Counted from the stretch's first letter, positions 55,955 to 63,541 are shown. The stretch is 64,000 bases of DNA from Salpingoeca rosetta (GCA_033442325.1 JAWQFM010000011.1:551498-615497); one strand, 5' to 3'. The notes: generated by a model from the letters alone, not told the origin. Program-made: numbers and translations.

Positions 55955-57409
<1,455 letters not shown>

Positions 57410-57747: not shown

Positions 57748-59528
57748 ATGGACAACCTTGGAGTGCTGCTGGCCAACGCTGGCTTGGATGAAGAGACAAG
57801 ACACGCCATCATGGCCATCGCAACCAACCAATGCAACAGTCTCGTCATGTTCGTGTGTCTTGTTGTCGCTTGGTGTTGAGAGCTTGATGTAGTCACTGGT
57901 TCGCCTGCGGTGAGCGTTGATTCCTTGTCCTTGTTTTGCTTTTGTGTTCTGGTCCATGTCTTCACTTCGGGTTGTATGCAGGAATGCCACCGCCTCACAA
58001 TGCAAGTTGCCTTCCAATTTGTGTGCATAGGTTAACTGGGAGAAGTCTCGGGGACACTGCAGTGAAAGCAGTCGCCGAGGCTTTGAGACGAGGCCGCACC
58101 GTGCAATGGCTGGAGTGCGTTGTTGTGTCATTATGGCCTTGTTGCGTGGTCTCGTGTTCTTGTATTGCTCTCAGTGGCGCGTGTTTGTTTGTCGTGCCCG
58201 AGATCCGTCGCTCGTGTGCCATTGCTGTGCTGTTGTACCCATGGCTGCAGGGTTGCGCGCTCGTGAGCTCATGCTGCTCACCGCACCCAAAACGTCAACA
58301 CACATGCGCGCGCACACATTGCCTGGCTTGTTTCAAAGCTTAACCAACAATTGCATTACTACCCACGGCGTCCAAGAACTCGCAGAGGTCATGCTCAACC
58401 ACCCGTCGCTCACCACCGTCTCGTACGTGTTTTAATTGAGGGGGGGCATGGCATCTATCTGGTTTGCGTGAGTAGCTGCTTGTGCTTGTGGGCCTACTGT
58501 GCATTTATTGCCAATTGTACGTTGTGAGCGAAGTCCAGCATTTACACAAACAAACAAACAAACAAACAAACAAACAAACAAACATACATACATACATACA
58601 TACATACATACATACATACATACATACATACATACATACATACATACATACATACATACATACATACATACATACATACATACATACATACATACATACA
58701 TACATACATACATACATACATACATACATACATACATACATACATACACAAACACACAGACTCGCTGGGAATGACCTCGACGATCAAGCCATGTTCTTCC
58801 TCGAAGAAGTGCTGCTGCACAACCCCAAGATGAAAACAATCTCGTGTGTACTCGCGTGTACTGCGACATGTCACATACTGTGAGGTGCCCCAAGGCAGTC
58901 ATAGATTTATTTGCTTGTTCACTCACAACCATTTCCACTTGCTTGCGCGTGCGCTATGGCTAAATTGCCTTGACCACTCAGGGTGCATGACAACTCCATG
59001 GTCACGGCTCGCGGATACCAGACCATCCACAATGCCGAGAAAGCCAAGAAACAACGGGCATCATCGACTCCTGCGTAAGGTTGACGCCTTGCGCCCTCGT
59101 GTTGCGGCACACTGGCTGGTGTAGCCAATAGCGTCAGCACGCGTTGCTTTTCGTGCGACCGCACTCATTTTACTATGCCCGTTCCCTTGGCACCTGCACA
59201 TGTTTCCTTACAGTTTCGCTCACGTTGTTGAGGATGGCGATGCTGACGAAGGCCAGGACTTTGAAGTGGAGCAGCAGCAAGGGAGGGAGAATCCAGGCCG
59301 CCTGCTGACGTGGGACTTAGCTGGCCCAGGTGGGTCTCCTCGTTTGTGCCCCACGCATGGAAGTAAAGGCATGTGCTCACTTTCGCGATCGTGCATGTGT
59401 CACTCCTCTTTGCATGTGCACACATACACGTACACACACACACACACATGTACACACGACATGACACATACACACGCGCTCGCTCGCTCGCATGCATGTA
59501 CACTTTCCTACTTCAAGTCCTTCACAAT

Positions 59529-59601
<73 letters not shown>

Positions 59602-62299
59602 TGCCCGAATGGCGAATGTCCATGTGCAGCCATACCGAACGAGGGTGCTTCGTCGTCCACGGGCTCCCCTGTAAACACATCAACCGACGCCGAATCGCAT
59701 CGAGCCTCTATGCACGACGACGCGTTTGGTCAACACGACAGCATGCAAGTGGCAGAGCAAGACGCCCTGATTGAACAGCTCCGTGAGTGCGTGCCTGCAT
59801 GCAAGTTGCATGCGCCCGCGTGCCGGCCTTGTTCGTGCGTTACTGTCTTTATGTCTCAGAAGTGTTGTGGTGTCTTCGTGCACCAAACACTTGCACTGCA
59901 TGCCACGCACGCTCGATTGAAGAACTTACCGTTTTTCCTTGGGGTATCTCGTGCAACTGCCGCCAGTGGATGAACAAGCCGAGTCTCGCCGTCTGATCGA
60001 AAGCCACAGAACCCAGATCGAAAGCCAGAGAACGCAGATTGAGAGCCAACGTGAGTTGTATAATGTGCGCTGTGTCCTGTGCGCTTCGTTGTGCCTAGGA
60101 TGCTGTCTCTGGCGGATGTGTCTGCTCACGTGTGTGTCCGTGGCAGGCTTGCGCTCACATGATTTTGGTTTTGTCTCGTTGGCAGAGATTGAGATGGAGG
60201 AAATGGCAAGGTTGAAGGAGTACGTCGTGGAGCTGCAGCAGAACGCCAGTGAGAGTTTTACGGGGGCCACAGTACAACACAGAAGCGTGTGGTGTTTTCG
60301 AGTGACATGATGGCGAGCGCTGTTACAGCTCGCCCGAAGATGGTGCAGATGAGCAACAACATTGCTAATATCGATTGAGGAAGAGTGTTTCTGATATGCC
60401 CTGTCCTGTAACCCCCGTCTTGTTTACAGGTGATGAGCGAGCCCGCCTCTTGGCCCAGCTCAAACGCCTAGGTATGGTCGTTTCGAGTCGGGGATGCTAG
60501 GCGTCGCTGAAGGAAGAGCAGTGTGTTGTTTGCCTTTGTACGATCGATGCGTGAAGACGTGAGGTCCCCCTCGCTCACTCAGAAGCTCCACTTTTGACAC
60601 CCAAGATGTGCGCTCAACATCATGTACTGTATTGATTTGGTCAACAGAGAGCGAGCTTTCGTGGCACAAGGAGTGCATCACACGCCTCTACCGTACGAGG
60701 CAACCGGACAACGCAACATTCGGGCGAGATAACGGTACATGTTGAACACACTTGCAGCAAGTTGACACGTATCATGGATTATTGTGTCGTGTCGTTGTGC
60801 AACAAGCCTGCAATGTCACTACACATGCCACACGTCAAGTATCAATCTCTCTAATTCTAATTCCAATCATGCATGTGAACCATCAGGGTTTGAAGCCGAA
60901 GCCGAAGTCTCAGGCGCACAATCGTTGGAGGCCCAGCTCACGCGACAAGCAGGTGAGATGGTGCCAATGCCCCTGGCTCTCCGTGGCTCTGTGCTGTGTG
61001 TGAACTTTGTGATCGCAAACGTGGCATTCGCATACCCTACAGCAGAGCAATGCTCTTGTCTCGTGCCACCTGATATCAAGCACTCATCCCGCGTTTTCAC
61101 ACTCAAAAACTCTTGCTCTGCGTGACAGAGCTCGCTGAGAGCATGCTGAGGTTGAATCTGCGGCCCACCTTGTTTGCCGAGAAGGTTTGCGCTACAGACT
61201 CAAACGGCAACCCCACCCAAGGCAGATTTGGCCGCCTATTTCGAAGCACATTCTCCGGGCACATGGTTGCCCTCAAGGAAGTGGGGGATGTCCGGCAGCG
61301 GCCCGGGCTGCGAGAGCTGGTGCACGGACTGAAAGCGCCACTGTCGCGTCATCACGGCGACAAGCGAGTCCTGCGAGAGGTGGCCATCCTCGCCTCCATC
61401 CGCCACCCAAACGTCGTGCAATTCCTGGGCGTGTGCTATGACGAGGCAGAGAAAACACTCTTCTTTGTGCTGAGCTGGGCAGACAACGGTTCCCTGTTCG
61501 ACTTCATGTACGTGAAGAGGCGCAAGCTCAGCCACATTGACAGGCTGCGCATCTTGAGCGAGGTTGCCGGCGCCATGGAGTTCCTGCATGCCCACGACGT
61601 GGTGCACCGCGACCTCAAGTCTCCCAACGTGCTGCTGGATGCTGTGCTCTCCGCCAAGGTGGCGGATTTTGGGCTGAGCACGTTCAAGAACACGGAGACC
61701 TCTTCGCTGTCCCGAGTGACCGGAACCCCACTTTGGGCGTCGCCCGAGCAGCTGTTGAGCAAGAAGTTGCGCTCGGACACGGACGTATTTTCCTTTGGCT
61801 GCCTGGCGTGGGAGGTGTGGTTTGCTGTCAAGCCATGGCACCATGGCGAATATGAAAGGGACGGTGTATCGCTGGTGCAACTTGCCCTCAAGTACGACAA
61901 GCACGAGTACCTGCCGCTCGAGGAAGAAATCAACGGACAGGAAATGCCGGTTCACCTGCGAGCGCTCCTTCGTGGCTGCTTCACCACGAGTGGTAGCCGC
62001 CTCAGCTTTGCTCAGCTTCACGCAGCACTCAGGGCACAATATTGCGCCAACAAGGAGCACGAACCGGAACCGCTTGATTTTGAGCAGCAAACCAGGCTGT
62101 TGTATGGCAGGCCGGATGCTGTGTGGAAGTTCGACCCTGACATCCTTGCAACACTGGGGAAGAAGAAGCACGCATTGTCAACCCGCGACACAGTGTACGT
62201 CGTGCCACTTGATCTGGAGAACCAGGATGAGGCCAGCATCGTCAAGACGGTGCGTGTGTATGTGTGCGTGTGGGTGGGGGGGGGGCGGGGTGATGTGTG

Positions 62300-62385
<86 letters not shown>

Positions 62386-63541
62386 TTGTGTGGTTGTGTG
62401 GTTGTGTGGTTGTGTGGTTGTGGATGTGTGCGAAATGTAGTATGCGTTTTCTGTCTTTGGTGCTCGCTGCTCGCCCCCCCCCGTCCTAATGTCGTCACAA
62501 CTCACACCCCCTGCCCTTCTCTCTGCTTTGTATTCTGCTCTGATCTTCATCCACTGCACACCACAGCTCCTTCGTCAGGCTGGTGGTCGCACCGCTCGGC
62601 AGCCAGACCTTCTTGGGCCATTTGGTCGCAAGGTCGCGGCTGCTGGTATTACATGGTGTGATCAGAAACTCGCAGCGTTCAATGGCGCCGTGCATCGCAA
62701 CAAGACGCGCTTCCGCGGCCACCTCAGAAACACAAGCCACCCATTTGCACCCAAATATCGGCACGACACAAGCACTGGGTTTGCCACTCTCGAGGAGGAG
62801 CGCTATGTGCTGGAGCAAGTGACAATGGCGCGGCATTACAAGATGCTCGACCTACAGCAATTGTTTGCCAACCCGCAGCTACGCATCCAGCGCGTGTTTC
62901 ATGGCGTGAAATCCTTCGATGCAGCTGTGGGCATCCTGGGGAGTGACTTTGCGCGCCTGCGCATGACAGACGATGGCTGGTTTGGCGCTGGCCTCTACTT
63001 CACACCAGACCTTGATTATGCGCTTGCATTTACTCAAGAGTGCGACGGAGCCGACGTGCCAGCCGATCTTCAGCTTCCTCATCTGAAGTCGGGCAAATCT
63101 TATCGCATCGTGCTGGCTTGCGATGTGCAGTACGGCAATCCCTATCCTGTCACGAAGCACAGCGTGCACCCGCAGGCGACGTCCCACGAGAGGATGCAGG
63201 CCAGCAACAGCTTCTACACCTTCCGCAACAAACCTCTTGTTGCTGGTCACGATGCACATGTTGCTGTGGTTGATTTCCAGAGGGTTTCTGGTGACAACGA
63301 TGACAATGTCGACAACGTACGCCCCTTTGACTCGTACAAGGATTGGGAGCACCCTGACGCCAACCCCGTGGCGGAAATCCTCCTCAGTGACCCGTCCTGT
63401 GTACTGGTTCGTGCCGTGTTGGTGTTTGATGCGGAGCACGTCTCATCATCAGAGGCCACAACCACGCAAGCTGAGGCGCAATACACTGGTCCTTCAACAG
63501 CGTCAGCACCTCACACTCATCAAGCAGGCATCAAGCGTTGA
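57748..63541 (+). CDS. LRR (RI/NLRC3-type) - coiled coil - TKL Ser/Thr kinase - PARP-like ADP-ribosyltransferase fusion
   Basis: 13 phase-consistent GT-AG exons. LRR exons 58031-58114, 58339-58422, 58760-58843. Kinase exon 61129-62249 (VALK, LREV, HRDLKSPN, DFG, GTPLWASPE, DVFSFG). ART exon 62567-63541 (VFHG, GWFGAGLYFT, VLACDVQYGNPY, AEILL). Confidence 0.88.
58582..58748. repeat. (ACAT)n microsatellite preceded by (CAAA)n, running up to the acceptor of an LRR exon
   Basis: Read directly from the sequence. Confidence 0.9.
59527..59600. repeat. (AAC)n microsatellite, intronic
   Basis: Read directly from the sequence. Confidence 0.9.

Follow-up and report, generated by a model that had tools for sequence, protein, structure and literature searches.

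A transcribed LRR, coiled-coil, kinase and PARP-type gene of the choanoflagellate Salpingoeca rosetta and its family of candidate sensor-effector proteins

Introduction

PARP10, PARP12, PARP13 (ZAP), PARP14 and PARP15 are antiviral or interferon-linked PARPs belonging to a mono-ADP-ribosyltransferase clade, in which the third position of the catalytic His-Tyr-Glu (H-Y-E) triad is occupied by I, L, Y or V. Recognition by repeats is found together with a PARP domain in tankyrase, which also has a self-associating SAM domain; with a TKL-group kinase in LRRK2 and other ROCO proteins, where ankyrin repeats and leucine-rich repeats (LRRs) precede the kinase; and in the animal NLRs (NOD2, NLRP1, NLRX1), whose LRRs are of the ribonuclease inhibitor (RI) type. 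Here we describe a gene that joins counterparts of several of these modules on one chain. It lies at positions 57748-63541 on the plus strand of a 64,000-nucleotide stretch (GCA_033442325.1 JAWQFM010000011.1:551498-615497; hereafter the window, from whose first letter all positions are counted) of Salpingoeca rosetta, a genetically tractable member of the choanoflagellates, the sister group of animals, and it encodes RI-type LRRs, a coiled coil, a kinase domain and a C-terminal domain resembling the ADP-ribosyltransferase (ART) domain of PARPs.

How does this protein compare with the systems just mentioned? With the mono-ART PARPs it shares the predicted catalytic fold (Z 13.6-14.1, root-mean-square deviation (rmsd) ~2.7 Å over ~158 residues), the H and Y motifs and the best profile matches among solved structures; unlike them, its family has Glu at the third triad position, as in PARP1-5, and the protein has no macro, WWE or CCCH domain, is fused to a kinase and falls below the Pfam PARP threshold. 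Tankyrase, like this protein, pairs its H-Y-E PARP domain (structural Z 14) with recognition by repeats and a module for self-association, and relatives from Microstomoeca even carry ankyrin repeats; however, the present protein has a kinase inserted before the ART and a coiled coil in place of SAM, and the sequence relation is remote (E ~0.02). LRRK2 and the ROCO proteins resemble it in placing cytosolic repeat modules ahead of a kinase of the TKL group (here by annotation), and S. rosetta also has an LRR-Roc-COR protein ending in this very ART, but our gene encodes no Roc GTPase, COR or WD40, its predicted dimerisation runs via the coiled coil rather than COR, and the ART comes after the kinase. 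With the animal NLRs and ribonuclease inhibitor it has in common the 28-residue RI-type LRRs, a fold match and one repeat per 84-nt phase-2 exon, whereas NACHT/NB-ARC, CARD, PYD and death-fold domains are absent, the repeats number only five and the effector enzymes sit on the same chain. Finally, the five-repeat LRR and the helix that caps its C-terminal end are matched best in structure by the C-terminal LRR of tropomodulin and leiomodin, yet the identity is only 14-17%, no actin-binding helices were identified and outside the LRR the proteins differ completely. A literature search found no published description of a kinase-PARP fusion architecture or of its accession numbers.

One transcribed gene encodes all four modules

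The gene comprises 14 exons and 13 GT..AG introns, and splices to a frame of 3159 nt and 1052 amino acids with its sole stop codon at the end, in a window of eukaryotic composition (~55% G+C) whose introns are full of microsatellites. Spliced RNA contigs were compared with it over 58749-62285, a span that avoids a (CATA)n repeat and the GT-rich intron 13. The contigs of runs X4 and X5 derive from RNA, because the introns are absent from them; nine of the 13 introns are shown directly, all with GT..AG joints, and loose ends agree with two further introns. The nine joints link exons 58760-58843, 58982-59074, 59214-59329, 59630-59782, 59967-60050, 60186-60248, 60430-60471, 60648-60734, 60887-60952 and 61129 onward. 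One contig (1711 or 1750 nt) starts ~480-520 nt upstream of 58760 and reaches the kinase exon, the upstream loose end of this LRR-to-kinase contig closing with the final 30 letters of the LRR exon that ends at 58422. A second contig passes from the end of the kinase exon at 62249 to the letters of 62567 onward, which is the kinase-to-ART junction; the phase-0 GT..AG intron removed there (intron 13, 62250-62566, 317 nt, rich in GT repeats) had been predicted beforehand from the sequence and from P0002, a homologous transcript with both domains. The gene is real and transcribed, and the single continuous spliced frame that a sequence-only reading of the window had proposed, together with its four-part architecture, is borne out by gene model, spliced contigs, domain profiles and structural models.

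Many small exons, introns rich in repeats and the existence of free-standing relatives of the ART exon (P0001, P0005) might be taken to mean that two or three adjacent genes, encoding LRR, kinase and ART, have been merged into one model. This is almost certainly wrong: one spliced contig connects the LRR exons with the kinase exon, a second bridges kinase and ART, transcriptome open reading frames (ORFs) of Microstomoeca and Didymoeca contain kinase and ART, the annotation concurs, and the junction is conserved in 17 paralogues. A fusion artefact was therefore rejected on the strength of the contigs that cross both boundaries.

The 1052-residue product equals the annotated XP_004994525.1 (P0031, 1050 aa, 'TKL protein kinase') except for two residues at the exon-1 donor, and equals XP_004994524.1 (P0025, 1032 aa, 'variant') from the first LRR exon onward. 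P0028, also of 1052 aa, was considered as the product by virtue of its length and rejected; it is a paralogue. The gene is thus known in GenBank and UniProt, but merely as a TKL kinase. Of the earlier statement that no characterised animal protein has this architecture, the part that stands is that no paper describing it was found; the gene, however, is from a choanoflagellate, not an animal, and was already annotated.

A divergent PARP-type domain at the C terminus

Exon 14 (62567-63541) encodes the PARP-type ART domain, with its core at residues ~834-1018, and then a disordered tail up to the stop codon. An AlphaFold2 (AF2) model of the domain, built from an alignment with 13 relatives, has a mean predicted local distance difference test score (pLDDT) of 81.4 and a predicted template modelling score (pTM) of 0.82, and its top 50 Foldseek matches are PARP catalytic domains without exception (E ~1e-6). 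Structural superposition with VIA-align gave Z 13.4-14.1, with PARP12 at Z 14.1 and rmsd 2.7 Å over 158 aa and with PARP14, tankyrase 1/2 and PARP10 similar; neighbours in the ESM Atlas are likewise PARP families. When a profile of 37 family sequences was compared with solved structures, ZAP/PARP13 (5e-7), PARP10 (1e-6) and PARP12 (3e-6) came out best, followed by matches to PARP15, PARP4, PARP14, PARP16, PARP2 and the tankyrases. In the profile alignment, the FHG of the family falls on the YHG of PARP10, GxGxYF on GKGVYF, and the conserved Glu on the third triad position of ZAP, which places H840 (62900-62902), Y872 (62996-62998) and E998 (63374-63376) at the triad positions; Y879 of the domain lies at 63017-63019. 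H, Y, E and the adjacent motifs are nearly invariant across the family, and the motifs quoted at the outset (VFHG with H840, GAGLYFT with Y872 and PVAEILL with E998, besides the heptad stretch of the coiled coil) were all found. As judged from its modelled fold, the C-terminal domain belongs to the PARP-family ARTs as a divergent member with H-Y-E retained, and is a putative enzyme, in agreement with the PARP-like assignment made from the sequence.

The ART exon alone has no Pfam match and no PDB sequence match, and PF00644 is absent at E<=1 for this protein. Weak PF00644 matches do occur in 13 of the 14 aligned family members (best E 2.6e-6), the paralogues shown reaching 17.8-18.3 bits, below the gathering threshold of 26.7 bits. 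Family members fall under this threshold, so the ART represents a divergent PARP subfamily, and PARP evolution surveys relying on Pfam's PARP model would probably miss it, because the domain escapes that model. No mention of a kinase-PARP fusion is made in the PARP survey of Perina et al. 2014 (PMC4245714).

The distance from canonical PARPs and the missing Pfam match of this copy raise the question of whether the protein might be an ordinary signalling kinase whose PARP-like domain is regulatory, acting as an NAD+/ADP-ribose-binding or docking module or in auto-modification only. It would suit such a role that profile comparison ranks ZAP, with its catalytically inactive PARP-like domain, as the nearest solved relative, and that databases annotate the protein only as a kinase. 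However, the triad that is missing in ZAP is kept in this family, and H, Y, E and the NAD-site motifs (GxGxYFTPDLDYA, GNPYPV, HDAHV) are almost invariant in many paralogues from three genera, a pattern to be expected under purifying selection on catalysis. We regard a purely regulatory domain as rather improbable, and the domain as a putative catalyst.

The kinase domain

Exon 13 (61129-62249) holds the whole kinase domain (residues ~380-655) and a conserved segment that precedes the ART (LLYGRPDAVWKF...). Pfam assigns Pkinase at 3e-39 and PK_Tyr_Ser-Thr at 6.9e-39 (135.4 and 134.1 bits versus cut-offs of 31.7 and 23.1). The catalytic motifs are all present, namely K404 (61275-61277), E438 (61377-61379), HRDLKSPN with D516 (61611-61613) and N521 (61626-61628), DFG with D534 (61665-61667) and SPE with E561 (61746-61748), and they are retained in nearly all aligned family members. 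The nearest solved kinases mix TKL (CTR1, RAF) with TK (EGFR, ABL), and the database annotation says TKL. These motifs and matches support a protein kinase that looks intact and has putative activity, probably a TKL-type Ser/Thr kinase; the description of the domain as intact holds for every catalytic motif and for Pfam scores near 1e-39, and a point against it is the Gly-rich loop of this copy, where Q replaces the first glycine.

LRR module, linker and coiled coil

The N-terminal part (residues 1-148) consists of five 28-residue RI-type LRR units, three of them on 84-nt phase-2 exons. Exon 1 (57748-57854) starts at the first in-frame ATG and contains the first, capping unit; exon 2 (58031-58114), supported by its GT..AG borders and frame and identical in P0025 and P0031, exon 3 (58339-58422), reached by the loose end of the RNA contigs that lies before 58760, and exon 4 (58760-58843), joined at 58843 to 58982 in X4 and X5, each encode one repeat in 84 nt at phase 2; and exon 5 (58982-59074), bounded by RNA joints, encodes the last unit with a long capping helix at residues 127-145 of the LRR model. 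In that AF2 model (six aligned N-termini, pLDDT 92.4), strands and helices alternate with a period of 28 residues, with strands at residues 32, 60, 88 and 116, and the early assignment to the RI-type LRRs is upheld by Foldseek matches to ribonuclease inhibitor, NLRP1, NLRX1, NOD2 and NLRP9/14, all LRR matches lying at E ~1e-7 to 1e-5. As an observation on the side, the consecutive 84-nt phase-2 exons between 58031 and 58843 carry exactly one LRR each, so that gain or loss of repeats by exon duplication would keep the frame.

In Foldseek, however, the LRR model matches tropomodulin and leiomodin best (E 2e-7, TM 0.72, 14-17% identity), and several LRR proteins of axonemal doublet microtubules match it well, which makes docking on the cytoskeleton equally compatible with the fold. 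On this basis the protein could be a regulator of cytoskeleton or cilium, whose RI-type LRR docks on actin pointed ends or axonemal complexes and whose kinase and ART modify cytoskeletal proteins of the collar or flagellum. The LRRs of NLRP1, NLRX1, NOD2 and ribonuclease inhibitor nevertheless score nearly the same as tropomodulin, so that the fold class does not discriminate, and relatives carry ankyrin repeats instead of the LRR, or neither. We consider a cytoskeletal function decidedly improbable. By the same token, an RI-type LRR of five repeats is not diagnostic of immunity, because tropomodulin and axonemal LRR proteins have the same fold. The proposal of an NLR-like sensor is accordingly upheld in its fold match to the LRRs of NLRs, but weakened by the sharing of that fold and by the lack of NACHT or any other NTPase. 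Two identities were considered and rejected. Pfam finds no NACHT/NB-ARC or other NTPase in P0025, the region from LRR to kinase being a low-complexity linker and a coiled coil, and the gene is not an NLR, because the NTPase is absent; Roc and COR are likewise absent from P0025 in Pfam, and the gene does not encode a ROCO protein.

Residues 150-227 form an acidic, Ser/Thr-rich linker, which is disordered. Exon 6 (59214-59329) encodes its acidic, low-complexity part, and exon 7 (59630-59782) its Ser/Thr-rich part followed by the start of the coiled coil (residue 228, 59743). The coiled coil, ~90 residues with a heptad repeat (residues 228-~320), continues through exon 8 (59967-60050), with the heptads IESHRTQ and IESQRTQ and in-register contacts at residues 245-266, exon 9 (60186-60248) and exon 10 (60430-60471) into exon 11 (60648-60734), where the predicted dimer interface ends (residue 319, 60692-60694) and a linker follows; exon 12 (60887-60952) encodes a helical linker before the kinase. 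The borders of exons 6 to 12 are all given by RNA joints. A homodimer model of the coiled coil reaches an interface score (ipSAE, interaction prediction score from aligned errors) of 0.56 versus 0.00 for the best control, with at least 85% of contacts agreeing between runs and a partner pLDDT of at least 76; of proteins solved as pairs of one chain, 21 of 30 attain this ipSAE mark, and of those solved as single chains, none of 23; the eukaryotic figures are 17 of 29 and 0 of 30. Across residues 228-319 the contacts are in register, which makes the predicted dimer parallel. Self-association of the coiled coil as a parallel homodimer is supported by this model, in line with the oligomerisation by coiled coil that had been suggested.

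No membrane segment was seen in the protein, the maximal Kyte-Doolittle mean over 19 residues being 1.69 and located within β-strands of the ART.

A family with variable N-termini on a conserved core

The sequence-only reading had presented the protein as a singular receptor, but genome search and annotated proteins make it one of about 20 paralogues. The search for paralogues and for the taxonomic range of the architecture returned ~22 strong loci for this ART in S. rosetta, with about ten weaker ones, and kin in Microstomoeca and Didymoeca. The kinase exon lies directly upstream of the ART in 17 of the 20 loci fetched, and in all 17 the kinase-ART intron occupies the same protein position, as seen from the gap in tblastn. 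In one paralogue (L025), the GT-rich intron at this junction is stop-free and in frame, which gives a 700-aa open frame through the intron. At least seven annotated S. rosetta proteins combine LRR_6, kinase and ART (this gene, P0018, P0020, P0021, P0028, P0032 and P0035), and other annotated members have coiled-coil N-termini and no named domain; paralogues that are otherwise unnamed appear in UniRef as 'PARP catalytic domain-containing protein'. When the DNA upstream of paralogous kinase exons was searched with a hidden Markov model of this gene's five LRR units, hardly any LRRs turned up; the search is insensitive, as Pfam finds LRR_6 in annotated paralogues.

The architectures that contain this ART include LRR-kinase-ART, Ank-kinase-ART, Ank-ART and LRR-Roc-COR-TIR-ART (Ank, ankyrin repeats). 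In Microstomoeca roanoka the ART occurs as Ank-kinase-ART and Ank-ART, and in Didymoeca costata as kinase-ART and COR-ART; transcriptome ORFs of both genera join kinase and ART. In S. rosetta itself, PTSG_11903 (P0033, XP_004996163.1, 1728 aa) contains LRR_6, Roc, COR-A and TIR and then the same ART (profile E 5e-89). Another S. rosetta protein, PTSG_09951 (P0008), carries this ART behind a Cys-rich N-terminal region (CxxC ... CxxC) that has no Pfam match and that may, from its Cys pattern, be a zinc-binding sensor module in place of LRR and kinase.

In a tree of the kinase-ART region, the S. rosetta copies form two within-species clades, and this gene is sister to P0021 (100/99 support) within the clade that holds every LRR-bearing member in the tree. 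Identity to P0021, the closest paralogue, is 73% in the kinase, 75% in the pre-ART segment and 60% in the ART core, and 36% in the LRR; linker and coiled coil are barely alignable.

With the threshold set at E<=1e-30, an exhaustive profile search returned 34 cluster representatives; relaxing it to E<=1e-10 gave 277, and E<=0.001 gave 1332. Among the 23 matches looked up by source, 20 are from choanoflagellates, three are from Paulinella and Apiculatamorpha, and none is an animal protein, a count that does not imply absence from animals, as most of the listed matches are unnamed. A separate observation concerns a protein of 1267 aa in the transcriptome of Paulinella chromatophora (EukProt; P0048 / P0162), which combines a SidE-type phosphodiesterase (PF12252, 1e-29), a kinase and a PARP domain (PF00644, 2.7e-8) akin to this family. 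The phosphodiesterase adjoining an ART recalls the SidE chemistry of Legionella; the Paulinella protein is eukaryotic.

Proposed function

Taken as a whole, we consider it fairly probable that the locus is a single expressed gene for a cytosolic LRR-coiled coil-TKL kinase-PARP protein of 1050-1052 aa with two predicted catalytic domains, which works as a regulated dimer and belongs to a sensor-effector family. The protein would be a constitutive dimer through its coiled coil, and the short LRR arc would serve as a regulatory module that binds a protein or ligand. Occupation of the LRR might alter the geometry of the two kinase domains and so allow trans-autophosphorylation, whereupon kinase and adjacent ART would phosphorylate and mono-ADP-ribosylate substrates or one another. 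Several observations weigh against this view. The raw RNA-seq runs X16 and X17 yielded 0 and 5 reads, so that expression there is low or the runs are no test; LRR_6 (PF13516) scores only 19.6 bits (E 8.8e-4) for P0025, a product of this gene, under the cut-off of 23.4 bits that is passed by the paralogues P0018 (62.7 bits), P0020 (43.1) and P0021 (26.5); predictions of coiled-coil dimers can pass through general likeness to solved coiled coils; and the predicted structures rest on shallow alignments (14 sequences for the ART and six for the LRR).

What might such a dimer sense? A sensor-effector role is suggested by N-termini (LRR or ankyrin) that vary while the kinase-ART core stays constant, by expansion within the lineage and by the TIR and ROCO modules with which the same ART is associated, and this family pattern would fit a sensor-effector for stress, microbes or viruses better than a housekeeping function, which is the least certain step of the proposal. 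An innate-immune role and killing through NAD+ consumption, as first put forward for this gene, are plausible but can only be inferred, with indirect support from the fast-diverging N-terminus, the lineage-specific expansion and the same ART at the end of an LRR-Roc-COR-TIR protein. In its strongest form, that idea would make the protein a death switch, in which the LRR would detect a molecule from a pathogen, the coiled coil would bring about higher-order oligomers, the kinase would amplify, and the ART would kill or arrest the cell via NAD+ consumption or massive ADP-ribosylation. The kept H-Y-E triad, the expansion with its fast-diverging N-terminus, the position of the same ART after TIR in PTSG_11903 and the identity of the nearest solved relatives by profile (ZAP, PARP10, PARP12, PARP14 and PARP15) are what such a switch might display. 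However, an NTPase oligomerisation module is absent, the model supports a dimer only, five repeats offer a small recognition surface, and to our knowledge PARP-type enzymes do not act as free NADases. A death switch thus appears quite improbable to us.

Beyond the regulated dimer that we favour for this gene, a broader and tentative idea, which we hold to be unlikely though worth stating, is that proteins with the kinase-ART core, and their Roc-COR-(TIR)-ART sisters, form a class of pre-metazoan cytosolic pattern-recognition or guard receptors, in which swappable LRR or ankyrin sensors would feed an output of phosphorylation and ADP-ribosylation. If true, the closest relatives of animals would possess an immune logic unlike that of NLRs, TLRs and cGAS-STING, one that animals themselves have lost or replaced. 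In any event, this is a large conserved family in which recognition-type repeats, a kinase and a PARP-type enzyme that appears active occur on one chain, and cross-talk of phosphorylation with ADP-ribosylation could be tested directly in it. Should the sensor reading hold, the family would show cell-autonomous defence or environmental sensing that predates the animal NLR and interferon-PARP systems.

Start of the gene and its surroundings

Two GT donors in the same phase, 6 nt from each other (57849 and 57855), are available for exon 1. The annotation takes the upstream donor (exon end 57848), which gives 1050 aa, and the downstream donor (exon end 57854) yields the canonical 28-residue LRR register and 1052 aa; judged from the sequence, use of either is possible. 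The variant XP_004994524.1 begins at an ATG within intron 1 (~57984).

RI-type LRR exons of a neighbouring gene occur ~9 kb beyond the end of the window (L034 4073-4802; contig ~624.6-625.3 kb), with 40-43% identity per 28-aa unit to the LRR exons of this gene; no kinase or ART match was found near them. Such identity is usual among RI-type LRRs, and the neighbour is therefore not regarded as a specific decoy. Long microsatellites interrupt three introns, namely (CATA)n at 58582-58748 in intron 3, (AAC)n at 59528-59600 in intron 6 and (GT)n at 62286-62420 in intron 13. On the minus strand, a coding-looking exon at 56738-57409 has its ATG at 57409, ~340 nt from the start codon of this gene, and is probably a divergently transcribed neighbour with a shared promoter region; 57748 fits as the start codon, because the divergent ATG leaves only those ~340 nt for such a region.

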